Virus record (IMG/VR): IMGVR_UViG_3300042519_004024
Span: 1-64,000 of that record
Length of the DNA: 64,000 bases
Direction: 5' to 3' (one strand)
Below are positions 1 through 62,308 of the stretch, piece after piece. Positions within the stretch are counted from its first letter, which is position 1. Each line of letters starts with the position of its first letter. The position numbers were made by a program, and so were the translations under genes. Below the pieces are notes generated by a model, which saw only the letters and a program-made list of their open reading frames with translations, ran no database searches and was not told the origin of the DNA.

Positions 1-462
1 TTATCCAAAATATTTTTCCAATTTTGATTTATCATGGTCAGATAAAGAATCCCACCATTCATCAACTTCAATTTCACTTAAATGCATATTATCATCAAGT
101 GTGATTCCAGAATCCACACAAATTTCTGTACCAACACTTTCTAAATCGATGGTATCATAACAATCATTATAATCATCATAATTATTATACCCAAATTCAA
201 TAAAATATGGACTTGAAAGATACTCTGAATCATTTTGTAACATCCGTCTAATTGATCCGGGATAATCGTATCTACCGTACCCCCAACCGTTAAAATCATA
301 GTTTCTTAAAGTCAAAGGAATATCTTCAACGGTTTTGACTATAAGTATATCTTCATCTAAACCAATAATTTTAAATGTTAAATCAATACCATATTTGTTC
401 TTAACACTTTCACGAGTAAGAGTGTTAAATAATTTTTCAAGAGTATTAATATTAAAATCCAT
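1..462 (-). CDS. hypothetical acidic protein
   Basis: ORF track 1..573; start moved to MDFNINTL (ATG at 462), 1 nt from the stop of the 464..889 gene. Confidence 0.65.
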   Translation of the reverse strand: MDFNINTLEKLFNTLTRESVKNKYGIDLTFKIIGLDEDILIVKTVEDIPLTLRNYDFNGWGYGRYDYPGSIRRMLQNDSEYLSSPYFIEFGYNNYDDYNDCYDTIDLESVGTEICVDSGITLDDNMHLSEIEVDEWWDSLSDHDKSKLEKYFG

Positions 463-463
463 A

Positions 464-889
464 TTAATTAAATTTAAATCTTTTTTTCTTTTTAATATTA
501 TATGCAAAACGTGTATACCCAAAAGAAACCTCAGAATCCTTAGAATCATCGTAGTTGTAGTCAATACAATCACATTTTACACCCAAATAATCATATACAT
601 AATCAACCATAACTTCAGAAAATATTTTACGTCTAAAGTGGGGAATATATTTTATTAAATCTTCAACAAAATCACTGCTCAATGACAAATCATTTTTACA
701 ACCAGGACTTTTACCTGATTTTTTTCCATAAAAAATTGTCATTATATCACTCCCATTAGAATCATTAATGTCAACCCATTGCTTATTATTACGATCAGAC
801 TCACCAAATGAAAGTTTACCACCTGTGATGGTATCAAGTAAAGTATAAACAAGAAGTTTATATTGTTTTTTTGTGATAATGATTTTCAT
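464..889 (-). CDS. leader-bearing protein (MKIIITxxQY class), unknown function
   Basis: N-terminus MKIIITKKQYKLL; TATTTAT 5 nt upstream (895-901). Confidence 0.8.
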   Translation of the reverse strand: MKIIITKKQYKLLVYTLLDTITGGKLSFGESDRNNKQWVDINDSNGSDIMTIFYGKKSGKSPGCKNDLSLSSDFVEDLIKYIPHFRRKIFSEVMVDYVYDYLGVKCDCIDYNYDDSKDSEVSFGYTRFAYNIKKKKRFKFN

Positions 890-12023: not shown

Positions 12024-12797
12024 TTATTTAGACTCAGGTAATTTCATATCCTTTATAAATTTATCGTGAGACTTTTTATAAGATTTCTGTGACTCATCAT
12101 TTGAATCTTTAGTGTATTGCCAATTCCAATAAAGTTTGTTGTTAGGTTTGAACCCATAATACTCATGACTTTCTTTTTGTGTTTCAGTAACATTCTCACC
12201 ATTCCAATTTTGTCCAACACAAATAAATCCTGATTCAATATCTTTAATTAAATTAGACTCACCTAAGGTTGAGTGTCTATTTTGAATCCATGTAAGTCTT
12301 TCCATTAAGTTTTGGTAATACATATTTGCTTGTCCCCATCTTACAGATGAAAAGAATACCACCGCATCTGATTCAAATAATTCTTTACTAACCTTCCATA
12401 GTTCATCTGATGGTTCATTAATATTTACCCAACATCTATGATGTCCTGTGGGGTTCTTTTTCTTGTCTTTAAGAGCCGCTTTTAATAATCCACAAGAGTT
12501 TCCATCAGCTCTTGATACATTACCCTCACATGGTAATATTTTAAGTTCTGTGATATCCATATAAGTTGCCTTGTTACCCAATTCTTCTTTAATGTGTAAT
12601 GCCAACAATCTTGATTTAGGAATGTCCATATTATTCTCATCCCAATTATATCTATTGGAACAACTTAGTAATAAAACTTTCTTTTTATTTTTAAGTATTT
12701 TAATTGTTTCTTCTAATACTTTCCATCCGTCAGATTGTACCATCTCTTCGGATAACATTATTGATTTCATTCTTGATATTTGTTCTTGTAGATTCAT
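12024..12797 (-). CDS. leader-fused flavodoxin-fold NAD(P)H:FMN reductase / iron-sulfur flavoprotein-like protein
   Basis: KVLLLSCSNR, ILPCEG..C..C, DAVVFFSSVRWG, LMERL. Confidence 0.8.
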   Translation of the reverse strand: MNLQEQISRMKSIMLSEEMVQSDGWKVLEETIKILKNKKKVLLLSCSNRYNWDENNMDIPKSRLLALHIKEELGNKATYMDITELKILPCEGNVSRADGNSCGLLKAALKDKKKNPTGHHRCWVNINEPSDELWKVSKELFESDAVVFFSSVRWGQANMYYQNLMERLTWIQNRHSTLGESNLIKDIESGFICVGQNWNGENVTETQKESHEYYGFKPNNKLYWNWQYTKDSNDESQKSYKKSHDKFIKDMKLPESK

Positions 12798-13288
12798 TAT
12801 TTTTTCTTTTTAACACAATTAGGGTATTGTTTACCAAACATTGTTTTCATTCCTTTTTGAGTATATCCTTTCCAACACTTTTCTGTTAACTCACCTTCTT
12901 TCATTTCAATTTCAGAAGAATCTGTATCAAAAATTATATCACCTATTACATCTAATGTTTTTTTGTTTGTGGCGTTTTTAATTACCTTCGGGGCTTTTCC
13001 TTCATCGTATGCTTCTTTCCATCTTTTTGCACATAAACACCATCTATCTCCGCTTTTTAACATAGATAAATCATTTCCTTTTGATTTTGTAAACTCAAGG
13101 AATTCATCATCCACTTCACTACAAACCGTGTGTGTACCTCCATCTGTACTATCTGTCTTGCAATAACCATCCCTGAAATAACCTGTAATTGGATTTTTCC
13201 CGCATATTTGTAATGGTTTATCTAATATATTCATATCAGATATATCCATCATTGATTTCATTCTTGATAATTGTTCTTGTAGGTTCAT
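12797..13288 (-). CDS. leader-fused DUF2237-family protein with C-terminal Cys mini-module
   Basis: PITGYFRDGYC, HTVC, GND, GDRWCLCAKRW; tail CWKGY...PNCV; TATTTAT 4 nt upstream. Confidence 0.8.
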   Translation of the reverse strand: MNLQEQLSRMKSMMDISDMNILDKPLQICGKNPITGYFRDGYCKTDSTDGGTHTVCSEVDDEFLEFTKSKGNDLSMLKSGDRWCLCAKRWKEAYDEGKAPKVIKNATNKKTLDVIGDIIFDTDSSEIEMKEGELTEKCWKGYTQKGMKTMFGKQYPNCVKKKK

Positions 13289-13310
13289 AGTAATAAATAC
13301 TATAAAAATA

Positions 13311-13337
13311 AAAAACCCCACCTATAATGGATGGGGA
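13311..13337 (-). terminator. intrinsic terminator
   Basis: CCCCA/TGGGG stem plus T-run after the nitroreductase. Confidence 0.65.
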
Positions 13338-13343
13338 CTTTTA

Positions 13344-13973
13344 TTATTTTTTAATGAAGAACTTTTCGTTATCCCACCTTACTTTCTTTAGTGACGCAAG
13401 ATAATCATTTTCACCATCTCTATATCCTAATGGTAGAAGTGCTACTGACATTAAACCTAATTCTTGTAATCCTAAGATTCTATCTACCGCAGCAGGATTG
13501 AATCCTTCCATTGGTGTTGAATCCACTTCCTCTGTTGCTGCCGCCACTAAAGCAAATCCTAAACCAATATATGCTTGTCTTTGTGCCCATGTAACTTTTT
13601 GTTCATGTTCCATATTAGATAGTGAACCCTTAACCATATCACCTAATCCATTTAACGATTCTACAGGGATTTCTCTTTGTCTTGCAATCTCATTCATATA
13701 AATGTCTACCGCATCGTCTGATACGTCGTCCCATGTAGCAAACACAAGTACTGCCGATGAGTCTGCTAATTGTGATTGTCCGTAAGCGGCTCCTTGTAGT
13801 TCTTCTTTTAATTTCTGATCCTCTACAACAATAACATTGTATGGTGTAAGTCCGTATGAGCTCGGTGCAAGTCTTGTGACTTCTAAGATTCTTTCTAATT
13901 TATCCTGTGGGATTTTCTCCCCATTCATTTTCTTGGTGGCATATCTCCACTCTAATGATTTTAATAGTTCCAT
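13344..13973 (-). CDS. nitroreductase family NAD(P)H-dependent oxidoreductase
   Basis: WRYATKK, LAPSSYGL.P, AAYGQ.Q, STPMEGF; no leader. Confidence 0.9.
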   Translation of the reverse strand: MELLKSLEWRYATKKMNGEKIPQDKLERILEVTRLAPSSYGLTPYNVIVVEDQKLKEELQGAAYGQSQLADSSAVLVFATWDDVSDDAVDIYMNEIARQREIPVESLNGLGDMVKGSLSNMEHEQKVTWAQRQAYIGLGFALVAAATEEVDSTPMEGFNPAAVDRILGLQELGLMSVALLPLGYRDGENDYLASLKKVRWDNEKFFIKK

Positions 13974-14075
13974 AATTATTTTTGTTTTACTCTCAATTAT
14001 AGAACTTTTAAATTTTATTGTAAACAAAAAATAGGGTTATTTACCCCCATCGATATTTGTTTTTGTATATTCATA

Positions 14076-14534
14076 TTATATAATTATTAAATCCCAAGCT
14101 TTACACCCATACTTATCGTTTATTAAATTTAAAAGACTTTCTTTCCAATTCATTTGTGGACCAAAGTAGTTTTCAATATCTTCGGCAAAGTCCTGATAAA
14201 ATACAATTACATTAAAACGTGGATCTTTAACATCAGGGAAATCATAACAAGGTTCAGGTAATTCATCTCTTAATTCTTTAGGGTAATCCCCATCATCATC
14301 GTATTTAGTATCATCAACCAATTTAAATATATAATCTTCATAATGATGTGTCGGTAAAACAAACCCGATAGCATATGGATCACAACATACCCCCATACCA
14401 CAGTTATAGTTTGCCCAATCGTAGTACATATCATCAAACCCATCAAACAACATATTAAGTAGGTTGTGTAGTACGGGTTTAATGTTTGTTTCTTCCCTTA
14501 ATACTTTTTTTATGTGTTCTTTTTTACTTCTCAT
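14076..14534 (-). CDS. protein with degenerate leader
   Basis: MRSKKEHIKKVLREE; start overlaps the 3' end of 14524..14826. Confidence 0.7.
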   Translation of the reverse strand: MRSKKEHIKKVLREETNIKPVLHNLLNMLFDGFDDMYYDWANYNCGMGVCCDPYAIGFVLPTHHYEDYIFKLVDDTKYDDDGDYPKELRDELPEPCYDFPDVKDPRFNVIVFYQDFAEDIENYFGPQMNWKESLLNLINDKYGCKAWDLIII

Positions 14535-14826
14535 CACAATTTGTGTTTGTTATAATAGCAAATAAGGATACAGGTATATATGCTTTTAAAGAAACTTCCA
14601 ATTTTTCATTTAAATAATTACCTGAATCCCCATTATATAGTACAAGTATTATATATGTATTTTCCACATACACAGCAACTACATCACATACATTTTCCTC
14701 ACCAAGATAACTTATTGTGAGTTCCTCCAAAAGATCAGAAAATTTACCTTTATTTACAGTTTCTTTTTTAAACTTCTTTATGGTTTCTTCCCTTAATACT
14801 TTTATTATGTGTTCTTGTAGGTTCAT
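14524..14826 (-). CDS. leader-bearing single-module protein (VCD..YIP..C module)
   Basis: MNLQEHIIKVLREE; body resembles the repeats in 17367..19274. Confidence 0.8.
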   Translation of the reverse strand: MNLQEHIIKVLREETIKKFKKETVNKGKFSDLLEELTISYLGEENVCDVVAVYVENTYIILVLYNGDSGNYLNEKLEVSLKAYIPVSLFAIITNTNCDEK

Positions 14827-15422
14827 TGCTGTAATTGGTTTTTAACCGTATTATAAAAATATTCACTAACTTTTTTTGGTGAGTCAATATTTTTTCCTTT
14901 CATGTCTCTTTTATAATGACTAATCATCATTGATATTTGTTGTAATGAAATATTTTTGTACATTTGTGGTGGTGTAAATGAACCAATTAGTCCCATCTTT
15001 TGAAGTTGTCTGATTTTCCTTGCCGCGAATTCATCTGCAACTTCCTCTGTATTTTTCATAAACTCAGCGGCATGTCTTTCTGAAACATCACCCAAATAAC
15101 AACGATACATAAGTTCTTCACCATACTTTTTAAATTGATATTGGTGCGCAACTTCGTGAAGTATAACAAACAACAAAAATGGTAATGGTCTATTAAGTAC
15201 TGTTGAATTAATTAAAACCCCAGTTTCTAATGCGATACCTAATGCTGGTACACTAAAACTTGAGAAGTTTATTCTTTTACAGTTTGATTCTTCAATAAAC
15301 TTTTTTACGAATTCTTTTAGTTCATCTGACATATCATGTGTATTTGATAATTCATCTAAGAATACATCAATACCTTCTGTCTCTTCCTTTAATATTCTTC
15401 TTATATGTTCTTGTAAATTCAT
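14823..15422 (-). CDS. leader-fused HExxH zinc metallopeptidase (ImmA/IrrE-like)
   Basis: FVILHEVAHQY and EEVADEFA. Confidence 0.7.
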   Translation of the reverse strand: MNLQEHIRRILKEETEGIDVFLDELSNTHDMSDELKEFVKKFIEESNCKRINFSSFSVPALGIALETGVLINSTVLNRPLPFLLFVILHEVAHQYQFKKYGEELMYRCYLGDVSERHAAEFMKNTEEVADEFAARKIRQLQKMGLIGSFTPPQMYKNISLQQISMMISHYKRDMKGKNIDSPKKVSEYFYNTVKNQLQQ

Positions 15423-15423
15423 A

Positions 15424-15792
15424 TTAATATGTAACGTGTTCTGCTTCTGTATCAAACTCACTATTAAACCAATCTATAACATACGTTGCTGCGTCTTCAC
15501 CTAAATAATTTTCAAGCGTTTTATATATTTCTGGATTCATATGTAGTTCTCTTTTTGTAGGGGTATACGACGCATATATATGATCGGTTTTATTATCAAA
15601 ACATTCATATAAAAAACTATCCCAAAACAATGGTCGTCTTTCTTTTAAGTGTGCACCATCTTTATTAAAGTTTGGATAAAGTGCCTTTAATATTGAATCA
15701 ACGGCACTAATGTTTTTAATTATTTGGTTACTGTAGTCTTCCTGTGGAAACTCCTCGATTAATACTTTTCTTATATGTTCTTGTAGATTCAT
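15424..15792 (-). CDS. leader-bearing protein
   Basis: MNLQEHIRKVLIEE; TATTTAT 7 nt upstream. Confidence 0.8.
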   Translation of the reverse strand: MNLQEHIRKVLIEEFPQEDYSNQIIKNISAVDSILKALYPNFNKDGAHLKERRPLFWDSFLYECFDNKTDHIYASYTPTKRELHMNPEIYKTLENYLGEDAATYVIDWFNSEFDTEAEHVTY

Positions 15793-15837
15793 ATTATAGA
15801 TAAATATATCCCTAACACAATTATGTTGTTGTGTAGG

Positions 15838-17366: not shown

Positions 17367-19274
17367 TTAATTATACATTGGTTTCCACCCACAATTAGGT
17401 TTACCATAACTTCCGACATTTAAATTATCGATTGGTAAATAACTTTTTATTGCTTCTTTAACTACCGTTATTTTTTTCCTAATGTAATGGTATTTCCCAT
17501 CATGTGTAAATTTATCATTTAATTCTTCTGTTCCAAAAACTAAATAAACAGAATACATATCATCTTCGTCGTCATACCACATATCAATATCACAAACACC
17601 CTCATCATTTTTGAATGGTTCGACAATATCTTTTAATAATTCTATATAGTTAGTTTTTTCTTTTTGTTCTCTTAGATAAATGTTTTCTTTTCCACAGTCT
17701 TTAACGTATTTTGAATATATTTCAAGTGAAATCCCTGTATAATCCCAAACCGTTTCCCATATATCGTCTAATACGTCGTCATACATTTTTTGAACCGCCT
17801 GTGTTTGTGGCCACATTTTTGTACCATAACCTCCAATAAATGTTACAGTAACTCCTGGGTAATTAATAACATTATCTAAAGATTTATCGTCAACATTTTT
17901 TAATTCAAATCCACATATAACGTGTTCATATTGTGGTAAAACTAAAGTATTTAAAACTGTGGTAATAAGTTCGTTTGTTGATTTCTCTTTGGATTCATTT
18001 ATATCTCTATCGAAATGTATATAGTATTTGAAGTCCATAGGAAATACTTCCAAGTCTTCCATGACTTGTTTCCCAACTCTTTTAATGACAGAGTTAATTC
18101 CTCCACCCAATCTAATCGAGTCTTCAACATTAAAGAATATATTAACAATAACATCATCGTGTGTGTCATCATAATACACAGTAAATTTTTTAACACTTGG
18201 GTATTCGTTTGTGTTTAAATAATCTTCTATTTTTTGAATCAATTTATTAAACTTTCTTTCTTGTTTAGATTCGTCAGATTCATTCATGAACTCAACCTCA
18301 TCCTCACAATTTTTTACATACCACGGGGTATAGATATATACCCTTATACCCATAGAACTTAGTGTATTTTCTAAAGATTCTAATTCTTGTTCTATGTCAT
18401 TATCACCAAAATAAGATGCTGTAGTTTTTGATCTTATTTCATATTCCTCATCTTCAGGATTGTATTCTACCCATATATCACAAAGTCCGTCCCAACTGAC
18501 TAAAGATAATAATGTGTTTATAACTTTTAGATTCTTTTCTATTTCTGTATCTTTGTTTTCTTTAATTGTTTCCTTACATCTTGTACTATCATATGAAACA
18601 AACGCCATTTCTATTATTGGTAAATATGTTTCTAGTGTATTTTTCATTTCTGTTCGTTTCTCACTGAATACATCATATCCAGGATATCTTCCTTTTTTGT
18701 AATATAAAACAATTTGTAAAGCATCTTCACCTGCATTTAAAAAAAACTCCGTTCTATATCCGCACAAGTCATCTTCATTTACTATACCATAAACAATACT
18801 GTCTATAACATCTTGGTACTGTTTAAACTCCTCTTCTTTTGGGTGCGGTTTTATTCCTTCTACAATATATTCATCACCTTTTCCTGAACCTTCATAAATC
18901 AATTTTATTGCGTCTCTTGGTATGTTTTCAAACGTTACAATGTGTTTTGACCTCGATTCAAAATGTCTATCTTTATACCACTTAACATTTGGTATTTTTG
19001 TTGTATCAATTTCCCATACATCATCGTCATATGTTGAATCGAACCAAGCTCTTTTGTTTGATGAGTTGGTTGCAAATATCGCGGGTTTACATTTTGTTCC
19101 ATATCCAACATATATTCTATAACATTCTCCATCTTTAACCTTTAATCCTTGTTCTTCAATTTTATTTCTAAACATAGGATTTGATTGATGAAATACTTTT
19201 TCATTTGGAATTATTTCTTTTCCTGCCGGTGAATAAGTTTCTTCTCTTAATATATGTCTAATTAGTTCTTTCAT
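17367..19274 (-). CDS. leader-bearing multi-module protein: ADP-ribosyltransferase-like module plus five ~100-aa modules
   Basis: VFHQS..I.EQGL..AIFAT..VWEIDT..ENIPRDAIK; linkers IVE, IKE, MNE, INE, LRE. Confidence 0.7.
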   Translation of the reverse strand: MKELIRHILREETYSPAGKEIIPNEKVFHQSNPMFRNKIEEQGLKVKDGECYRIYVGYGTKCKPAIFATNSSNKRAWFDSTYDDDVWEIDTTKIPNVKWYKDRHFESRSKHIVTFENIPRDAIKLIYEGSGKGDEYIVEGIKPHPKEEEFKQYQDVIDSIVYGIVNEDDLCGYRTEFFLNAGEDALQIVLYYKKGRYPGYDVFSEKRTEMKNTLETYLPIIEMAFVSYDSTRCKETIKENKDTEIEKNLKVINTLLSLVSWDGLCDIWVEYNPEDEEYEIRSKTTASYFGDNDIEQELESLENTLSSMGIRVYIYTPWYVKNCEDEVEFMNESDESKQERKFNKLIQKIEDYLNTNEYPSVKKFTVYYDDTHDDVIVNIFFNVEDSIRLGGGINSVIKRVGKQVMEDLEVFPMDFKYYIHFDRDINESKEKSTNELITTVLNTLVLPQYEHVICGFELKNVDDKSLDNVINYPGVTVTFIGGYGTKMWPQTQAVQKMYDDVLDDIWETVWDYTGISLEIYSKYVKDCGKENIYLREQKEKTNYIELLKDIVEPFKNDEGVCDIDMWYDDEDDMYSVYLVFGTEELNDKFTHDGKYHYIRKKITVVKEAIKSYLPIDNLNVGSYGKPNCGWKPMYN

Positions 19275-19286
19275 TTAATAAAAAGA

Positions 19287-20657
19287 TTATACTGTTGTAG
19301 TGGTTGGTTTAGCACAGAATGGTATTTCAAATGGTCCTTTTGGATCACCAATAACATCATAAATTGTTTCACCTTTTGAATTTTTAACTAAGACTCTTAC
19401 GGATTCTTCATGCGCTTTAGGATGACTAGGAGTGCTTTCTAAAATCAAAAATTTATCATTATTTGCAACTGCCTTATCATATATCGCTTTAGCCTTCTCA
19501 TCATCAATTGTAAAGACATTATATCTATAATTCCCTGCAGGAAAACAAGCGGTATTTCTGTCTTTACTTGTTTTAAGTGTTTGGGCGTTTTTAGTAGTTT
19601 CACAACATTCGTGTGTCCTATTCCATTTAAGACTTGTTAACTGTTCTTTATCAGGTAAAACTTGTATATCCATAGTACCAATTTTTCCAGGGGCATTTTT
19701 ATCTTGAACTGAGTTACCTTTGGCATCTTTTACAGTTAAATAAAAATCATTACCCGTATTGTCGTTTTCTTGCCCCGCACTAGCATTGTTAACACTTGCG
19801 TACAATTTACCATCATCTCTGACTATTGGCTCACCATTTAATGTTAATTTAAATCTACCTCTATTACAACAGTGAGCGGCTTTTGGTGTTGCTTCAACAA
19901 CTTCGTCATAGTTAAACTCAACCGTTAATCCTTTAATACAAGCCAAATCAGGATTTCTTTCTCCTTTATACTCACATATTGTCCCGTTGAATAGGACTAT
20001 TTGTCCTGGATTAGGATAACTTGCGGTATCTCTATTTTCGTCTATCCTTCCACCCGTATCAACTATATGAGACTCTATTACTGGCGTATCTATAAACACA
20101 ATTCTGTTTTTTGTTAAAAGGGGTTTCATTGATTTCCATAAGTTATTTGCTCTGTCTGCAGCATATTTAAGATCATCATCAAAAAATACTTGGTATTCTG
20201 GATAATTTAAATCATTTATTCCCGCACCTGATAACACGGTATTATAGGAAGTTTTATCGTATGTTTTTACCACATAATTATTATCCATAGTAGGTAAAAC
20301 TGCTCTACCACCAGTAGATGAATATTGTACATATTTATTATTTCTATCACTTCTCACCCTATTTGATGCACACCCAATTAATGTTACTTTACTAATACCT
20401 AAAAATGTTCCTAATTGCCATTTACTATATAAATCAGGTAAATTTGTATTAACATATTCTAAAATACCATTTATAAATTCTTGAGCTCTTTCATTAGTGG
20501 CTGCCTGAGCGGCACTAAACTCTTTTGAGTAATCTTTAAGATTTAAACACGTTCCCTCAACTGTTGATGTTGCGTCTTTTTCCTCACTAAGAATAATTCT
20601 CTTAATGTTCATTAAATCTTGGATTCTAAATATTTCTTCTTTTAATAAATTTTTCAT
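19287..20657 (-). CDS. leader-bearing large protein, possible OmpA-C-like region
   Basis: MKNLLKEEIFRIQDLM..ILSEE; KVTLIGCASN and AADRANNL. Confidence 0.7.
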   Translation of the reverse strand: MKNLLKEEIFRIQDLMNIKRIILSEEKDATSTVEGTCLNLKDYSKEFSAAQAATNERAQEFINGILEYVNTNLPDLYSKWQLGTFLGISKVTLIGCASNRVRSDRNNKYVQYSSTGGRAVLPTMDNNYVVKTYDKTSYNTVLSGAGINDLNYPEYQVFFDDDLKYAADRANNLWKSMKPLLTKNRIVFIDTPVIESHIVDTGGRIDENRDTASYPNPGQIVLFNGTICEYKGERNPDLACIKGLTVEFNYDEVVEATPKAAHCCNRGRFKLTLNGEPIVRDDGKLYASVNNASAGQENDNTGNDFYLTVKDAKGNSVQDKNAPGKIGTMDIQVLPDKEQLTSLKWNRTHECCETTKNAQTLKTSKDRNTACFPAGNYRYNVFTIDDEKAKAIYDKAVANNDKFLILESTPSHPKAHEESVRVLVKNSKGETIYDVIGDPKGPFEIPFCAKPTTTTV

Positions 20658-21139
20658 CTAACAAACATATAATAATTTATATTTATGTCTTTTTCATGAA
20701 CATTTATTTTACCAAAGATATCTTGTCTTTCTTCTTTCATTTTATATTCATTAGGAATCAATTCATACATTTCTTCAAAAAGTGTTTTAATTTTTTTACT
20801 TTCAATATATGGGTCATCATCTAATAAACTAAAATCTAATAAACTAAATGGATAAGCAAAACTTTCTTTTCGCTCAATTTGTTCATCTATTACGTCAGGA
20901 TATTTTAAATAATAATCTTTAAATGGTAAGTCGTAATATTCTTTAACTTTATCAACATTAACCTTTAAATCAATGTATAAATAATACTTACTTTCATCAT
21001 AATCTCCATTTTTTTCCCAACCGACAATAAAAGGAAATGTTTTATTTACTACCTTAACTACAATATCAATACCTTTATCGATCATATTATAATCGTTTTC
21101 AACTTCTTCTTTTAATATTCTTCTAATTAGTTGTTTCAT
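20654..21139 (-). CDS. leader-bearing protein
   Basis: MKQLIRRILKEE. Confidence 0.8.
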   Translation of the reverse strand: MKQLIRRILKEEVENDYNMIDKGIDIVVKVVNKTFPFIVGWEKNGDYDESKYYLYIDLKVNVDKVKEYYDLPFKDYYLKYPDVIDEQIERKESFAYPFSLLDFSLLDDDPYIESKKIKTLFEEMYELIPNEYKMKEERQDIFGKINVHEKDININYYMFVR

Positions 21140-21678
21140 TTTGATTCTAATTTATCTATAATTCTTTGTACATTATCTTTTTCCATTCTTCCGTAAAAGG
21201 CGGATGAGTCTTCTATACTTACACCATTGATTTCCGCTAAGGTAAGAAAGTTATCGGATCTTTTTTTTTCTAATTCAGGACAATCAAAATGAGCAATCTC
21301 AAAAGAACCTTCCTGTTCAAAACTATCTATTATATATGCATTGAAGAAGTCTATTTCCTCTTCTGTTAGTTTAGACTCGTCGTATTTAACATTTATATCT
21401 GCCCAACTATTGGTTCTCCATTTATTCCAATGTTCGTCTACAATATCAAAATCTAAAGTTATACAAGGGCAGTGTGCAAGATCATAATTAATATTAACCT
21501 TACCATTTGCCCCCCCAATTCTTTTTAAAATATTTGGGTTATCCCTGAATATACTTTTTAAGTTATCAACCCCACCAACATATCTTACTACAGAAAAAAT
21601 ACCTTCTCTGTTAATCATATCTAATAAATCATTAGACATGTTAGTTTCTTTTAATATTTTTCTAATCAGTTGTTTCAT
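21136..21678 (-). CDS. leader-bearing protein with 'VGG' module
   Basis: MKQLIRKILKET..EGIFSVVRYVGGVDNL. Confidence 0.8.
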   Translation of the reverse strand: MKQLIRKILKETNMSNDLLDMINREGIFSVVRYVGGVDNLKSIFRDNPNILKRIGGANGKVNINYDLAHCPCITLDFDIVDEHWNKWRTNSWADINVKYDESKLTEEEIDFFNAYIIDSFEQEGSFEIAHFDCPELEKKRSDNFLTLAEINGVSIEDSSAFYGRMEKDNVQRIIDKLESK

Positions 21679-23432: not shown

Positions 23433-23455
23433 TTTTTTTTAATATATTTATCATT

Positions 23456-24830: not shown

Positions 24831-24868
24831 AATATTTTTTATTATAAATATATATTAAAAAGAAAAAA

Positions 24869-35061: not shown

Positions 35062-35096
35062 AAGTTTTTTTAATTATAAATATATCTTAATTACTT

Positions 35097-40065: not shown

Positions 40066-41091
40066 TTATTTTCCAAATCCTACTTTACCACCACCCTTAA
40101 TTGTTGGTGCCTTTTTTAATCCCTCCAAGTTATCGATAGTCTCCTCAAAACTTCTACCCATAACAATAACCGAAATTACAACTTCTTTCAAATGTGACAA
40201 TGACATTCCCTCAGTTTTTTTAATCCACTCTTCAATGTTGATGTTTTTTAAATCATCCTCATTTAATTTATGTTCAATGTATGCTCTTCTGATATCATCG
40301 TTGGGTAACTCAACTTTATATCGTCTGTCAAAACGAGAAGGTCTATTTGTTATTCGTTCTTGTAATTTTTCAGGGTAGTTGGTTGTTGCTATATAAACAA
40401 CCCCCTCAATTTGTTTAACACCATCAAGAATGTTTAATAGTCTTGCCGTCTGATATCTATTTTCGCCAGCAAGTGAATCAATATCCTCCAATAGAACAAC
40501 TAACGGTCTGTTTGGTTCAACCTTTCTGAATGTTGCAATGAATGATGTAAATCTATCAACGTCTTCCTCATCTTTAACATTTATAACAATACCGTCTTTC
40601 TCAATTAACTGCTGAGAAATTAATTGTATAATTCCTGATTTTCCACATCCTGGTTCACCATACATCAGGATTCCTCGTTTGTGTATGTAATTGTATTTTT
40701 TATAATTTTCAGCCCTATTCCAAAAGTTATCAATATCTTTTAAAATGTCGGTAATCTCATAAGATGGTAGATGATACAACTCGTCTGTCTTGAATGGTTG
40801 TTTTTTCAAAGTATGTGTTTGTAAATTTCCATTCCAACCAATTTCATAAACACCGGCAGGGACTTTAGGTACTGTAACGTAAGCCGGAGCATATTCATCA
40901 TTTTTTAAGTTACTCCAACAAGAAGGAACATCAACATCTTTTTTTTCTTCGTTGTTTGGAATATTTATTTTTTTACGGATGATTGGTTCTTCTTCCTCAG
41001 AATAACCTGTATATTCAATAGCCTCATCAATATATTCTTCGCTCATGTTATTTCTTTTTAAAATTTTTTTTAATTCTTCTTTCCATTCCAT
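40066..41091 (-). CDS. AAA+ ATPase
   Basis: GEPGCGKS, LLEDID, LNILDG, TTNYPE, RPSRFD. Confidence 0.9.
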   Translation of the reverse strand: MEWKEELKKILKRNNMSEEYIDEAIEYTGYSEEEEPIIRKKINIPNNEEKKDVDVPSCWSNLKNDEYAPAYVTVPKVPAGVYEIGWNGNLQTHTLKKQPFKTDELYHLPSYEITDILKDIDNFWNRAENYKKYNYIHKRGILMYGEPGCGKSGIIQLISQQLIEKDGIVINVKDEEDVDRFTSFIATFRKVEPNRPLVVLLEDIDSLAGENRYQTARLLNILDGVKQIEGVVYIATTNYPEKLQERITNRPSRFDRRYKVELPNDDIRRAYIEHKLNEDDLKNINIEEWIKKTEGMSLSHLKEVVISVIVMGRSFEETIDNLEGLKKAPTIKGGGKVGFGK

Positions 41092-41264
41092 TTTTCAATT
41101 TTTTCCCAATCGTCTTTTTTTACAGCAACTCTTACACCATCAATGGTAAAGAATACCTCATTAGGAAAAACCATAGGATCTTCTATTTTTTCAGGGTTTA
41201 TTTTTATAGAATTATAATAAACCCCCTCATTTGCAAATCTAACTAATACTTCAATCTTTTCCAT
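41070..41264 (-). CDS. hypothetical protein
   Basis: 64 aa, in operon. Confidence 0.6.
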   Translation of the reverse strand: MEKIEVLVRFANEGVYYNSIKINPEKIEDPMVFPNEVFFTIDGVRVAVKKDDWEKIEKWNGKKN

Positions 41265-41466
41265 TTTTATTATTAAATGCTGACATTATCATACCATATT
41301 CTAAAACTATCAAAATAACTCTACCCCATATACTGGTTAATAACCACCAATTAAACGGATTTAAATCAAAATAAATTAAAGAGAATATAGAATACCAAAC
41401 AAAATTAAAAACAATTAATTCTGTGATTTTTAAACCTAAAGGTTTTTCTTTTTTATCTAAGGACAT
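41251..41466 (-). CDS. small membrane protein
   Basis: two hydrophobic segments. Confidence 0.65.
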   Translation of the reverse strand: MSLDKKEKPLGLKITELIVFNFVWYSIFSLIYFDLNPFNWWLLTSIWGRVILIVLEYGMIMSAFNNKNGKD

Positions 41467-41695
41467 AACTATGAATAATAATTAACACTTCTTCAATTCT
41501 ATCAGTTTTCATAACAATAGCTCGATCTTCTTTAACAACTATATCCATAATTCCAAGATCCTCTTTTAATCTATCGGATTGTATTTTAACTTCTTTTTTT
41601 GCGTCACCCTCATTTTTAAAGAACCCAAAATATGAGTCACAATTTCCTGTTTTGTCACATACTCCATAAATAATTTCTCTTGCTGGTTGTATCAT
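41453..41695 (-). CDS. hypothetical protein
   Basis: 80 aa, in operon. Confidence 0.65.
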   Translation of the reverse strand: MIQPAREIIYGVCDKTGNCDSYFGFFKNEGDAKKEVKIQSDRLKEDLGIMDIVVKEDRAIVMKTDRIEEVLIIIHSYVLR

Positions 41696-41719
41696 AATTT
41701 TAATTTTTTATAAGTTTAA

Positions 41720-41750
41720 TAAAAAAAGGTGACTCTATCAATGAGAGTCA
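41720..41750 (-). terminator. intrinsic terminator
   Basis: GGTGACTCT/AGAGTCACC plus T-run. Confidence 0.7.
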
Positions 41751-42871
41751 CCAACATTATTTTTTTCTCCGTATATTAAGTAGTCAGGGTTTATTACTTT
41801 AGATACTTTTCTACGATCACCAGTTACAGATTTCACAACTATACCTTCATGTGGTACTTTACCCCCTTCTATGTTGTTATTAAACACAAAAGTATCTTGT
41901 ATCTCTTTAACCCATATACCTTTGTATAGTAACTCAACTTGTGGTAATTGTAGACAATCAAAGTGTACTGTTTCATTTATGTATGGTTGGTACACTCCAT
42001 CAACTTCAACATCAAATCCTGCGAATTTAACATCGGTCAAACCGTACTCATAGTTTTTTTGTATACCAGCCCCGTATATCTCGCCGTATATAACAACACC
42101 TTCATTTAAGTCAGTTGGTTCGTAAGTATCTTTTACGTGATCCCACAACTTACCTCTTATGTCGTAAGTGTTCGCCACAGTTTTCCATACATCAGTATCG
42201 TAAAACCCTTGTGAATCAGAACCCTTCTCAACGTTATGAGAACCATAAACATATTCAAATGCTGCCCATTGATTTCCAAAGAACATTTTAACACGATCCC
42301 ATATAGATAGTTTTTTCTTTCTAACTATACCGTAACGAGCATTAGTTCCATGAAGTTTACGAGTTATAACAACTTCATCTTCCTCACTGAACATATCAGG
42401 TACGTTCTTTTGGTTAGGGAACTTGTAGTAAACTTTGAAGTTAGGGTTTTGGTGGTATTTTATTTTACGTCCACCAACACTTAACTGAACGGTTTTAACT
42501 GGTGGTTCGTATTTAGTTATACCAAGTATTCCCATCATATCATCACCTTCATTAACGTTGTTCTCCAATGATTTTGGTGCCAAGTATTTGAATGGTATTA
42601 ATAAACATTCAGAGTAAACACCTCGAAGTTTAACGGTACGAACTCTTTGTCCTTTACGAAGGTAGTTAGTTACTTCCATCAAGTCAGATAAAGCTTGTGG
42701 TATTACCGCATCAGTAGTTGCAACAACAACCTTATCGTCTACTTTGTATTCGCCTTTCTTGGTTATGGCGTTCCACCCACCAACAGTAACTAACTCTATG
42801 TTATCGGCGTTTGGTATTTCAGATATAGAACCTATCTTACCAACATATGCAACACTATTTAAATTTTCCAT
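41738..42871 (-). CDS. RNA ligase, DRB0094/Rnl2-type with N-terminal OB-like domain
   Basis: IPNADNIE; motif I KLHGTN; IYGEIYG; FDV; EGIVVK; KVINPDY. Confidence 0.9.
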   Translation of the reverse strand: MENLNSVAYVGKIGSISEIPNADNIELVTVGGWNAITKKGEYKVDDKVVVATTDAVIPQALSDLMEVTNYLRKGQRVRTVKLRGVYSECLLIPFKYLAPKSLENNVNEGDDMMGILGITKYEPPVKTVQLSVGGRKIKYHQNPNFKVYYKFPNQKNVPDMFSEEDEVVITRKLHGTNARYGIVRKKKLSIWDRVKMFFGNQWAAFEYVYGSHNVEKGSDSQGFYDTDVWKTVANTYDIRGKLWDHVKDTYEPTDLNEGVVIYGEIYGAGIQKNYEYGLTDVKFAGFDVEVDGVYQPYINETVHFDCLQLPQVELLYKGIWVKEIQDTFVFNNNIEGGKVPHEGIVVKSVTGDRRKVSKVINPDYLIYGEKNNVGDSH

Positions 42872-46792: not shown

Positions 46793-46817
46793 ACATATAA
46801 ATATATTGGGGTTTGGT

Positions 46818-54221: not shown

Positions 54222-54470
54222 TTAATTATTTAATAGATAAACAACTGTAGCCCCTAATGCATATCCAATCGCTGACGCCATTGCCATTTTTATTCTTTCT
54301 GTCCATGTTTTTGATTCAACCATATATCCAACAAAAGGTAACCCTAAGAACGGACCCATTGATGCCCAAAATATCATATAGACACTCCTTTCAGCAACGG
54401 TAGCAATATACATTGTTGATGCCGTTTCTAAAATGAATGCTGCTAGACCTATGATAAAGTATTTTTTCAT
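54222..54470 (-). CDS. small membrane protein
   Basis: three hydrophobic segments. Confidence 0.7.
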   Translation of the reverse strand: MKKYFIIGLAAFILETASTMYIATVAERSVYMIFWASMGPFLGLPFVGYMVESKTWTERIKMAMASAIGYALGATVVYLLNN

Positions 54471-55549
54471 TAATTTGATAATGGTGCTTTAATTGATGGG
54501 TGTGATTGATAATTTTCAACAACAAAATCAGTATTTTCTAAATGATTAAATAAAGATATGTCTTCAGATAGTGATTTAAAAAACTCGTCTGTTTTCATAA
54601 ACTTTAAAGTAGGTAATTGATAAGGTTCTCTTGTAATTTGTTGTCCAGCTTGTGTTAAATGGTTTTCATACAAATGAACATCACCCAAGTTACCAATTAA
54701 TTCATCAGGAACCATATTAACTTCTTTTGCAATGATTTCTAATAACAAGCCGTAAGATGCAATGTTGAATGGTAAACCTAAGAATGTATCTACTGAACGT
54801 TGATTCCACATTAAAGAGATTGCTCGTTTGGGGATGTTTGCCTGATTTACATCTAATTCTGCCAAACTACATTCATACCAACCTGCATTATTTGTTTGGA
54901 TTTTTTCTACACCGTATATTTCAACTCTTTCCTCCAAACTCAACTCTCTTGTATAAACTTGAAATCCATAATGACAAGGTGGAAGGACCATTTGGTCTAA
55001 TTCACCAACATTCCAAGCTGAAACCATTAATCGTCTTGAGTCTGGGTTTGTTTTAAGGTCATTGATTAGGTTTGCGATTTGGTCTATGACCTTTTCCCCA
55101 ACTAATGTATGTAGACCGTTGTGTCCTATTGTTACATTTTCACCAGTTCCCCACTTTCTCCACTGTTTACCATAAATAGGACCTAACTCACCCCACTTCT
55201 TAGCAAACTCATCATCTGTTTTAATTAATTCAATGAATCTTTCCATTGAAGTTTCTTCATCCGTGTAGTAAGTAAACCTTTTATACACGTCACCATTCCA
55301 AATATGACAATTGTTATCAACCAGGAACTTAATGTTTGTATCACCACGTAGAAACCATACTAATTCTGTTGTGATTGTTTTGAATGGCATTTTTTTAGTG
55401 GTAAGCAAAGGAAACCCATCTGACATCTTGTGTCGGATCTGTCTACCAAATACTGATCTGGTTCCCGTTCCTGTTCTATCATTTTTTTTAATACCATTTT
55501 GAATTATATCAAATAATAATTCTTGGTAATTTCTATCTAGTTGGTTCAT
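54470..55549 (-). CDS. thyA: thymidylate synthase
   Basis: DRTGTGT, FPLLTTKK, GPIYGKQWR, LPPCH, QRSVD..GLPFN, GDVHLY. Confidence 0.97.
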   Translation of the reverse strand: MNQLDRNYQELLFDIIQNGIKKNDRTGTGTRSVFGRQIRHKMSDGFPLLTTKKMPFKTITTELVWFLRGDTNIKFLVDNNCHIWNGDVYKRFTYYTDEETSMERFIELIKTDDEFAKKWGELGPIYGKQWRKWGTGENVTIGHNGLHTLVGEKVIDQIANLINDLKTNPDSRRLMVSAWNVGELDQMVLPPCHYGFQVYTRELSLEERVEIYGVEKIQTNNAGWYECSLAELDVNQANIPKRAISLMWNQRSVDTFLGLPFNIASYGLLLEIIAKEVNMVPDELIGNLGDVHLYENHLTQAGQQITREPYQLPTLKFMKTDEFFKSLSEDISLFNHLENTDFVVENYQSHPSIKAPLSN

Positions 55550-60669: not shown

Positions 60670-61596
60670 CTAAGATGGGAGTTTTTTTCCTTTGTGATGT
60701 GTTTTTTCGTTTTCTACTTTAATCTTAATCTTTGGTTCGTGTCCCTTTGGTAGTTTGTTTTTAATTCCTACCATTTCCCCCATGTCATTATCCATTCTAA
60801 CAGTAACTTCTTTTTTGTCAAGATTCAACATTATTTGTCCTGTAGTTTGCATGTTGTACATATTCTTAGTTCTGTATGGATTTAAAAATGGATTCTTATC
60901 GTATTTTTGTTTTAATCTGTCAATTACCTCACTGTCTGTTTTTACATCCTCTAAATGTTTTTTAGCAAAGTCTAATCTCATATGAGATGATTTTTTCTTT
61001 TCACCTTTAGTATAACCAACACTTTTATGGTATATTCCGTGGTTAGTTCTTACAATTACTTTTGTTTCTTTTTTTAATTTTTTAATAATAGGCGAATGTT
61101 TAGATGTCATTTCAATAACATAAACACCATTAGAATCTGAAACAAACGTTTCCCCCTTTAACCCAACATCTTTTTTATCTTTACCACTAAACCCAACAAT
61201 AGATTTTATTACTTGTGGTAATGTTTTTTGTGATAATGCCTTTCTTATTTTTTCACCATCATAAGATTTAATTCTGGTTTCAGTTGCATCGTTATTCCTT
61301 TTCTTTTGTACTTCTTTTCCTTCTTTTTCGTCTTGATTAACAAGTAAGCTAGAATTTACTATACCTATACCATATTCATTCATTCCTTCACTCCAATCAG
61401 TATCAACATCTCTCCAATACACCACTTCAACGCCATCAATAAGTTCGTGAACAATCTCAACTTTTGCTTTATACCCCCTGTCTCTATTTTTTGCAAGAAC
61501 AACACTATCACCAAGCCTAACCGCAGCTATTGTACATTCCTTTATTAACTCAGGTTGGGTTTCTTCTATTAATATTTGTTTAATTAAATTGTTCAT
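60670..61596 (-). CDS. leader-fused Ntn-hydrolase (peptidase C45 / choloylglycine-hydrolase-like)
   Basis: LIKE|CTIAA..LAKNRDR..EGMNEYGIGIVNS..RTNHG. Confidence 0.75.
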   Translation of the reverse strand: MNNLIKQILIEETQPELIKECTIAAVRLGDSVVLAKNRDRGYKAKVEIVHELIDGVEVVYWRDVDTDWSEGMNEYGIGIVNSSLLVNQDEKEGKEVQKKRNNDATETRIKSYDGEKIRKALSQKTLPQVIKSIVGFSGKDKKDVGLKGETFVSDSNGVYVIEMTSKHSPIIKKLKKETKVIVRTNHGIYHKSVGYTKGEKKKSSHMRLDFAKKHLEDVKTDSEVIDRLKQKYDKNPFLNPYRTKNMYNMQTTGQIMLNLDKKEVTVRMDNDMGEMVGIKNKLPKGHEPKIKIKVENEKTHHKGKKLPS

Positions 61597-62252
61597 TTAA
61601 ATTTTTTCACTCTTTCTTTTGTTCTCATTTTATTTGCGTAGTCTAACCAAACTTCTTTAACTTTTTTCCATTCTTTTTTTGGATTTTTAAACTTTCTTTT
61701 GTTTTCGTCAAACCATTCATCCATGGCGTCCTCCAAAGATATTTTTTTTGTTTTAGATCTTTTTATCAGTCCTCTAACATAAGCAGGTATTTCAACATTA
61801 GATGTTAAATATTTAAAATTATAATCTTCATCTTCTTCATCATATTCTTCATCATTTTTTACATACATATCGTCAAAATTTTGTTGCTCAACATGTTCTA
61901 ATTCATGTTCAATAGTTTCTTTTACTTCAGCAACTAAATCATTCATACTTTTAGGGAACTCGTCAGGGTTGTAGGTTATTTCAATTTCTATTTCTTGCAT
62001 ATCACCAGATCCCCTAACAGAAAACGGATCTTCCATTTTTTTATCTTCTATAAAATAACAAAAGAAATCAAAATTAGCATATTCATCACCTTTTTCAAAA
62101 TGAATATTCTGTAATTCAAAATCTTTTTTATTTTTAAACTGATTAATAACAAATCTAGATAAAGCCAATGATAGTTCATCTGTTTTTCTTTCTGTAATAA
62201 TTTTTTTTGAGATTTTTTTTACAATCCCCTCTAATAGTGTTTTTTTGTACAT
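61593..62252 (-). CDS. leader-fused HExxH zincin-like protein
   Basis: KKIITE; TIEHELEHVEQ..EIPAY; TATTTAT 4 nt upstream. Confidence 0.65.
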   Translation of the reverse strand: MYKKTLLEGIVKKISKKIITERKTDELSLALSRFVINQFKNKKDFELQNIHFEKGDEYANFDFFCYFIEDKKMEDPFSVRGSGDMQEIEIEITYNPDEFPKSMNDLVAEVKETIEHELEHVEQQNFDDMYVKNDEEYDEEDEDYNFKYLTSNVEIPAYVRGLIKRSKTKKISLEDAMDEWFDENKRKFKNPKKEWKKVKEVWLDYANKMRTKERVKKFK

Positions 62253-62308
62253 ACTAATAAATATCATTTAAAAAAAAAGTATTATATTTGTATCTAAATA
62301 AAATAGAT

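Follow-up and report, generated by a model that had tools for sequence, protein, structure and literature searches.

A leader-tagged modular polyprotein with prohead-protease-type junctions as candidate capsid cargo of an uncultured phage

Results

The window analysed here is a stretch of 64,000 nucleotides and corresponds to the initial 64 kb of an IMG/VR contig of 213,924 bp (record IMGVR_UViG_3300042519_004024), with a G+C content of about 30% and nearly all genes on its minus strand. Within it, the minus-strand open reading frame (ORF) 17367..19274 is intact and encodes a protein of 635 amino acids (aa) that comprises an 11-residue leader, a 128-residue domain (N) and five modules (M1 to M5) of 93–109 residues each (Table 1). 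A preliminary description of this DNA had proposed such a polyprotein, with an ADP-ribosyltransferase (ART)-like first module and five further modules of about 100 residues parted by x-x-E linkers. The sequence strings on which it relied (VFHQS, EQGL, AIFAT and WEIDT) are all present, and the sites that it named, IVE139, IKE239, MNE332, INE427 and LRE536, lie where its approximate coordinates placed them. The 635-aa protein is a leader-tagged modular polyprotein, akin to both the internal proteins of phage T4 and the polyvalent proteins of phages, and a variant that differs from them.

Large metagenomic protein sets contain 649 relatives of the protein when clustered at 90% and 476 representatives when clustered at 50%, many of them on contigs of 230–300 kb; the longest contig that encodes the protein measures 286,821 bp. 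Pfam and PHROGs matched no family in the 635-aa sequence, and tblastn against 50,697 phage records, T4 among them, gave no match at E≤1e-5. INPHARED, searched both by protein and by DNA, yielded no relative, the sole DNA match being a thyA fragment, and a literature search returned no description of the family.

Searches seeded with the individual segments defined six separate families, N, M1, M2, M3, M4 and M5, and in 120–277 homologues of the protein the segments behave as separate units. In the 120 homologues whose architectures were mapped, the modules occur in varied order and copy number and abut one another within 0–3 residues. The N domain occupies an internal position in most long relatives, and in P0069, P0078 and P0108 the leader leads straight into a module, which is M1 or M2 in some proteins. 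Because the segments shuffle as units and abut at the five sites named above, and because some proteins consist of a leader followed by M1 or M2, these sites are true module borders.

A self-BLASTP comparison of the 635-aa protein at E≤10 gave no off-diagonal match; the tandem repeats that had been anticipated are thus absent at the pairwise level, and profiles were required to link the modules. At the profile level the relationship does emerge, since hhalign matched M1 with M5 (E 7e-6), M4 with M5 (2e-5), M2 with M5 (2e-4), M1 with M4 (2.5e-4) and M3 with M5 (5e-4) over their full length, and an iterated search related M1 to M5 with E 2e-30. The N profile matched none of the M1 to M5 profiles. 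The five modules are therefore separate units of about the proposed size, but not simple repeats: they represent five distinct, remotely related families. Pairs of Cys stand at equivalent places in M1, M2, M4 and M5, and both Cys are invariant across 55 M5/M1 sequences; the Cys...YLP...Cys pattern reported in the preliminary description is real, with M3 lacking Cys altogether. The AlphaFold2 (AF2) model of M5, with a predicted local distance difference test score (pLDDT) of 92.1, has the topology a-b-b-a-a-b. M1 to M5 are probably small alpha/beta proteins. Searches of the PDB, the AFDB clusters and the ESM Atlas with the M5 fold returned generic two-layer alpha/beta matches only (KH-2, Asp23 and ZT-dimer; template modelling scores of ~0.5–0.6), so that the function of M5 cannot be read from its fold.

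The borders share a sequence motif. Every internal junction reads [L/I/M]-x-E and is followed by S, N, Q or G, the forms in the different modules being F[LM]NE↓S, DINE↓S, IYLRE↓[QS]K, LNE↓SK, [IV][KT]E↓N and YIVE↓G (the arrow marks the border, with P3, P2 and P1 before it and P1' after it). Among 255 non-redundant internal module copies, 250 end in phi-x-E, where phi is a hydrophobic residue. The Glu is missing from 23 of the 29 C-terminal copies of M2, M4 and M5, some of which stop right before it; M2, for example, ends F[LM]NE↓S at internal positions (as in ...EFLNE↓S) but ...EFLN, without Glu, at the C-terminus, and internal copies of M5 in homologues end ...W[KS]xLNE↓SK. A logo of 243 junctions gave L, I or M at P3, N at P2 (65%), E at P1 and S at P1' (77%), and the preferences for Asn at P2 and Ser at P1' are independent of how these junctions were gathered. 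The stricter pattern [LIM][NR]E[SQ] occurs three times in the 635-aa protein, always at a border; the remaining window ORFs, 18,184 residues in all, do not contain it once. Furthermore, the motif is common to modules that are unrelated to each other (N, the M modules, DUF2237 and a zincin-like module), and the junctions fall in low-confidence, unstructured ends of the AF2 models. The junction codons vary (TCT/TCC/CAA and AAT/AGA), so that DNA microhomology at the junctions is weak.

Leaders of the types MKxLI[KR]xILKEE or MNLQEHIRxxLxEE, 11–14 residues long, start at least 14 ORFs of the window, 12 of which lie in an island at 0.9–22 kb, and nearly all homologues of the 635-aa protein carry the same leader type. 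In the same genome beyond the window (67 kb), only two further leader ORFs were found, both just past the capsid gene. The leader of the 635-aa protein is amphipathic and ends ILRE↓E; this end, ILRE↓ETYSPAGKE, aligns position by position with the junction FLNE↓EDYSPAGKE, found where N follows M2. It is kept as protein rather than as DNA, given its synonymous codon variation and the lack of conservation of the upstream DNA; a repeated DNA element was ruled out on the same grounds. A search with the leader DNA pattern recovered nothing beyond four sites that were expected, all on the contig to which the window belongs. In addition, where the zincin-like and DUF2237 modules are fused in relatives, the joint reads ...LNE↓SIKKVLKEE↓TEG..., a junction followed by the core of a former leader; for the zincin-like module the fuller sequence is ...QLNE↓SIKKVLKEE↓TEGIDSF. 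Since fused joints retain the leader core, leader and linker are two forms of one element, and leader remnants within junctions indicate that fusions arise when a gene is joined to the leader of the next gene; neighbouring genes overlap by 4 nt. A nine-residue remnant, S-I-[KR]-[KR]-[VI]-L-[KR]-E-E, is present between two potential cut sites in P0151, P0160, P0196, P0215, P0137 and P0170, and cutting at both sites would free a small peptide.

A scan of the 64-kb window for protease or capsid genes found none. The head genes, ~75–85 kb from the 635-aa gene, were reached by walking along contigs from a single sample that match the window with 0 mismatches across 11.3 and 11.1 kb. Along the walk, large tail-like proteins come first, then a TerL of T4 type and a portal (Portal_T4, E 1e-77). 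Next are three proteins with lengths of 244, 90 and 149 residues, a Peptidase_S77 (235 residues), a 69-residue protein, an acidic scaffold-like protein of 482 residues and a 624-residue Gp23, in the order of T4 gp20-gp21-gp22-gp23. The Peptidase_S77 match has an E of 1e-22 and 80.9 bits (cut-off 27), and the Gp23 match an E of 1e-74. The protease, encoded at L120:11755-12462, shares 32% identity with T4 gp21, whose ELNHP and GVSSRG motifs it retains. The capsid protein contains HLINE↓AASTDSSGSF two residues ahead of its region of alignment with T4 gp23; in T4 gp23 itself, which is cut after Glu65, FLTE↓AEIGG lies 14 residues ahead of the same region. LINE↓A is predicted, from its motif and expected position, to be the maturation site of this gp23-type capsid protein. 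With P1' widened to S/Q/N/A/G, the loose motif also recovers ITLNE↓S in the 244-aa protein at the core position, and SIKE↓S and VIKE↓S in the scaffold-like protein and the protease. The presence in one genome of a gp20 portal, a gp21-family protease and a gp23 with LINE↓A supports a T4-like mechanism.

An AF2 model of the N domain (residues 12–139) was built with 44 diverse sequences and reached a pLDDT of 89.5. Foldseek placed Tpt1/KptA at the top against the PDB (E 8e-5) and, against the AFDB clusters, returned DUF4433 (the DarT family), RNA 2'-phosphotransferase and DUF952 (E 5e-5). By VIA-align, the best 17 solved structures were all Tpt1/KptA (Z 7.6–10.2), with DUF952 and many ART toxins next; the best match had a Z of 10.2 and a root-mean-square deviation (rmsd) of 2.1 Å over 87 residues, and the top structures had an rmsd of 2.1–2.5 Å. 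The alignment covers only residues ~77–180, the C-terminal NAD+ lobe, of these 177–187-residue enzymes. As judged from its predicted structure, residues 12–139 adopt an ART fold that is nearest to the NAD+ lobe of Tpt1/KptA.

The ART-like reading of the first module thus holds for the fold, but not at the level of sequence profiles: at E≤10, Pfam matched no ART family in the 44 N-domain sequences, its only recurring match being DUF5820 (18/44), and a profile search of the PDB sequences gave noise only. The N-terminal RNA-binding lobe of Tpt1, which bears most of the Arg-His-Arg-Arg tetrad, is absent, as just 11 leader residues precede N, and sequence and architecture together reject membership of N in the Tpt1/KptA, DarT or Alt families. 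The resemblance to T4 Alt that had been suggested did not stand, the nearest neighbours being the Tpt1/KptA NAD+ lobe and DarT-like/DUF952 models; because these structural neighbours are KptA-like, Alt is comparable in its proposed role only. Invariant residues in N are H29, R36, G43, L44, F67, D85, I89, W99, D102, T114, L125 and G129, and near-invariant ones are A68, T69 and S71 (F67-A68-T69-x-S71) and D83; His29 belongs to an HxS motif and D85 to a D-D-D stretch. The Glu of WEID is not conserved, and no Glu is invariant. The conserved residues may form an NAD+ site, and the N domain may have an NAD+-dependent activity.

An RNA-repair-type gene set is also encoded at 40066-42871 and at other places within the window, with an RNA ligase and matches to cREC_REC, HAD_SAK_2, polynucleotide kinase and metallophosphoesterases (Table 1). 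It could place the KptA-like ART fold in nucleic-acid end chemistry.

Several stand-alone leader genes are single-module counterparts of polyprotein modules (Table 1); most of the island leader ORFs contain no known domain. The gene that the preliminary description took for a one-module version of the 635-aa protein does consist of a leader and a single M5/M1-like module, although its match to M5 is weak (E 1e-4 with the M5 profile in the six-frame ORFs of the window; phmmer E 3e-4 to residues 336–411 of P0153, likewise weak). The zincin-like protein contains the motif ILHEVAHQ and resembles ImmA/IrrE, M48, SprT-like and polyvalent-protein-associated peptidases; in relatives, its module is always the last of the polyprotein. 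A nitroreductase-family gene adjoins the DUF2237 gene.

Table 1. Coordinates of the features described in the text. Positions refer to the window unless a contig prefix is given; P1 is the codon of the Glu that closes a module
Feature	Coordinates	Strand	Residues	P1 codon	Remarks
Leader	19242..19274	(-)	1-11		MKELIRHILRE
N module	18858..19241	(-)	12-139	18858-60	predicted ART fold; ends YIVE↓G
M1	18558..18857	(-)	140-239	18558-60	Cys171/Cys233; ends TIKE↓N; distinct family in homologues
M2	18279..18557	(-)	240-332	18279-81	Cys265/Cys323; net charge -15; ends FMNE↓S
M3	17994..18278	(-)	333-427	17994-96	no Cys; ends DINE↓S
M4	17667..17993	(-)	428-536	17667-69	Cys454/Cys527; ends IYLRE↓Q
M5	17370..17666	(-)	537-635		Cys561/Cys628; C-terminal copy; ends ...CGWKPMYN without junction Glu
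Leader ORF starts, island (12)	1354, 2087, 5316, 9788, 14826, 15422, 15792, 17361, 19274, 21139, 21678, 22070				0.9-22 kb
Leader ORF start outside island	47911	(+)
Leader ORF start outside island	61596	(-)
DUF2237 gene	12797..13321 (or 12797..13288)	(-)			degenerate leader MNLQEQLSRMKS...; polyprotein module in related phages
Nitroreductase-family gene	13344-14027	(-)
Stand-alone leader gene	14076..14534				polyprotein module in relatives
Stand-alone leader gene	14524..14826	(-)			leader MNLQEHIIKVLREE and single M5/M1-like module
Zincin-like leader gene (HExxH)	14823..15461 (or 14823..15422)	(-)			C-terminal module of polyproteins in related phages
Stand-alone leader gene	20654..21139	(-)			domain is N-terminal module of 15 homologous polyproteins
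Stand-alone leader gene	21136..21678	(-)			domain is N-terminal module of 71 homologous polyproteins
Stand-alone leader gene	61593..62267				polyprotein module in relatives
RNA-repair-type genes	40066-42871				RNA ligase at 41738-42871
Thymidylate synthase gene	54470-55549	(-)			359 residues
ATATATTTAT copies	1368-1377, 15800-15809, 24844-24853, 35076-35085, 46797-46806	(-)
ATATATTTAT copy	23442-23451	(+)
ATATATTTAT copy beyond window	L120:12794-12803				36 nt upstream of scaffold-like gene

The sequence ATATATTTAT is present in six copies in the window against 1.8 expected, a modest enrichment, and each copy lies on the coding strand with a start codon 5–15 nt downstream; a further copy precedes the scaffold-like gene. 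The sequence may act in transcription, as a promoter, or in initiation. At 1354 and 5316 it is preceded by G+C-rich hairpins with T runs after them. As a candidate promoter shared by leader genes and head genes it is uninformative: ATATATTTAT also precedes genes without a leader, and it therefore has no bearing on the link between the two groups.

Elsewhere in the genome, ribosomal protein S21 is encoded between portal and protease. Further genes, at L109:5375-7954 (just past the window end), at L116:16766-18805 and on another contig, code for a histidine kinase of the GAF-PAS type and a response regulator that accompanies it, for a ClpB-like protein with two AAA+ domains, for an FKBP, and for a holin and endolysin that form a pair. 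The start codons have no obvious Shine-Dalgarno sequence, proteins with CHU_C and GEVED domains are encoded, and a 287-nt stretch of thyA is 81% identical to Flavobacterium phage vB_FspM_immuto. Together with one of the samples, 3300002835, whose record prefix B570J we take to denote Lake Mendota, these features suggest that the source is a freshwater Bacteroidota phage. The thymidylate synthase has a large insertion, as its length exceeds the 266-position profile.

Discussion

We propose that the leader would dock the 635-aa precursor at the scaffolding core while the prohead assembles, as the T4 capsid-targeting sequence (CTS) does, and that the gp21-family prohead protease would then cut after the Glu of each [L/I/M]-x-E, removing the leader. 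These cuts would free the ART-fold domain and five small alpha/beta proteins within the head, and the six freed proteins would be ejected with the DNA and act on the host early in infection. We estimate the probability that the protein is such a leader-targeted precursor, cut by the prohead protease in the head and delivered in pieces to the host, at a little under 0.6. Both T4-type and giant-phage prohead proteases cleave after Glu in short motifs (PMC5694885, PMC10052503), and Ser is the preferred P1' residue in SPN3US (PMC10052503). For prohead loading in T4, the N-terminal ten residues of IPIII are enough, and the tag is removed by gp21; residues 4 and 7 of the CTS serve targeting, and residues 8 and 10 processing (PMC9026906). 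Read against the T4 CTS (MKTYQEFIAE), the leader shares its length class, hydrophobic pattern and ending, and for this reason we favour entry into the prohead and cutting by the S77 protease. The head-protease idea of the preliminary description thus gains strong circumstantial support from the common motif and its loss in C-terminal module copies, the gp21-family protease and the gp23 site, while prohead targeting, cleavage, packaging and ejection are steps that we infer.

Several observations weigh against this proposal. The M modules are acidic (net charge -6 to -15), whereas the T4 internal proteins are basic, and the leader resembles the T4 CTS only in its M-K start and hydrophobic pattern. 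The 635-aa gene sits in a long same-strand accessory block, 75–85 kb from the head module, and the source phage is uncultured. As for the junctions, [ILMV]-x-E alone is not above chance, with 16 sites in this Glu-rich protein; given that number and the absence of self-BLASTP repeats, the five x-x-E sites prove little by themselves. Two of them, IVE↓G and IKE↓N, fit the loose motif only, and 11 further phi-x-E sites within the leader and modules would need protection by folding. Moreover, the zincin-like peptidase of the same protein family could be the processing enzyme instead.

The 635-aa product might also act as an uncleaved multidomain protein of the polyvalent type, in which phi-x-E-S would be a linker, a domain cap or a scar of fusion and fission. 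Phage polyvalent proteins with 2–15 domains do exist, and some are packaged unprocessed (PMC5512222); in addition, fusions that retain a leader remnant (...LNE↓SIKKVLKEE↓...) resemble read-through joins of neighbouring genes, and neighbouring genes overlap by 4 nt. A passive linker, however, needs no uniform P3, P2, P1 and P1' between unrelated modules, nor should the Glu alone then disappear from 23 of the 29 C-terminal copies. The junction codons differ, which makes microhomology weak, and the motif fits the specificity class of a protease that the genome encodes. We consider this explanation unlikely, and still more improbable that the polyprotein is cut by another peptidase, either the zincin-like protein or a host enzyme, and is not necessarily packaged. 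The zincin-like module does resemble ImmA/IrrE, M48, SprT-like and polyvalent-associated peptidases and is the last module in relatives, and embedded zincin peptidases have been proposed to process polyvalent proteins (PMC5512222). Nevertheless, cutting after Glu with a hydrophobic P3 is documented for gp21-family proteases and not for such zincins, the 635-aa protein and most of its homologues have no zincin module, and the predicted maturation site of the capsid protein has the same motif.

The leader might instead be a signal of another kind, for an unfoldase, degradation, export or localisation, with a junction motif unrelated to capsid assembly, but we regard this as highly improbable. 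The genome does encode a ClpB-like AAA+ protein, and the leader genes cluster in the accessory island rather than in the head module. Against this, the leader contains no hydrophobic core of a secretion signal and ends in the junction motif, two more leader genes adjoin the capsid gene, and T4 offers a precedent that agrees in length, in pattern and in the phi-x-E at the end (PMC9026906). By analogy with that precedent, we propose that the leader is a capsid-targeting propeptide.

Proteins that enter the cell together with phage DNA are the first to engage host defences, and to our knowledge they are little known outside T4, P1 and the phiKZ group. If the proposal of prohead cleavage is correct, the polyprotein strategy, otherwise typical of RNA viruses, would be used for the injected proteome of a double-stranded DNA phage, and the junction motif would double as cutting site and as joint for module exchange. 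The leader and the phi-x-E↓S joints would then provide a rule, readable from sequence, to list the likely capsid cargo of an uncultured lineage that spans at least 476 clusters at 50% identity, and the family would show cargo evolving by fusion, fission and shuffling of modules. It is possible, although we hold this only tentatively, that the T4-type jumbo lineage maintains a combinatorial library of at least a dozen cargo domains, deployed as leader-tagged single proteins or as polyproteins cut by the head protease. The family also provides some dozen small domains, a minimal KptA-like ART fold among them, as candidates for new anti-defence or host-takeover activities, and leader and junction could serve as parts to load foreign proteins into T4-type capsids.

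Comparison with known systems

A close parallel is offered by the T4 internal proteins IPI–III and Alt, which likewise share a short amphipathic N-terminal tag ending in phi-x-E on unrelated, fast-evolving proteins. Both systems possess a gp21-family protease and a gp20/gp23 head, and both include an ART-fold enzyme or domain among the actual or putative cargo (Alt in T4). Here, however, many putative cargo units are concatenated in one ORF and parted by further protease-type sites. The leader also differs in sequence (MKELIRHILRE versus MKTYQEFIAE), the modules are acidic, the ART fold is KptA-like rather than of the Alt type, and the present system is known from sequence alone.

Polyvalent proteins (Iyer et al. 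2017, PMC5512222) are similar in that they are large phage proteins composed of shuffled unrelated domains, among them ART and zincin-like ones, and are predicted to be delivered with the DNA. Several conflict-type domains are indeed shuffled among the relatives described here, in which ART-fold, DUF2237 and zincin-like modules are fused. Unlike polyvalent proteins, members of the 635-aa family share one type of leader and one junction motif, the latter fitting the head protease; they do not rely on embedded peptidases, and their modules also exist as stand-alone leader-tagged genes. In the 635-aa protein, Pfam found no polyvalent-protein domain (LPD), and neither Pfam nor PHROG found an embedded peptidase.

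The ejection or inner-body proteins of phiKZ, 201phi2-1 and SPN3US, which are processed by gp21-related S80 proteases, likewise undergo repeated cuts after Glu in a three-residue motif. In these giant phages, the main effect of the cuts is to remove long propeptides or break them up, whereas the pieces between the predicted cuts described here are conserved folded domains; moreover, the protease here is an S77 enzyme, and a hydrophobic residue takes the place of A/S/G at P3. Finally, Tpt1/KptA, DarT/DUF4433 and DUF952 share the predicted fold of residues 12–139 (Z 10.2, rmsd 2.1–2.5 Å) and the conserved His in the first strand, from which the N domain departs in having no sequence-profile match to them, no RNA lobe and no invariant Glu.

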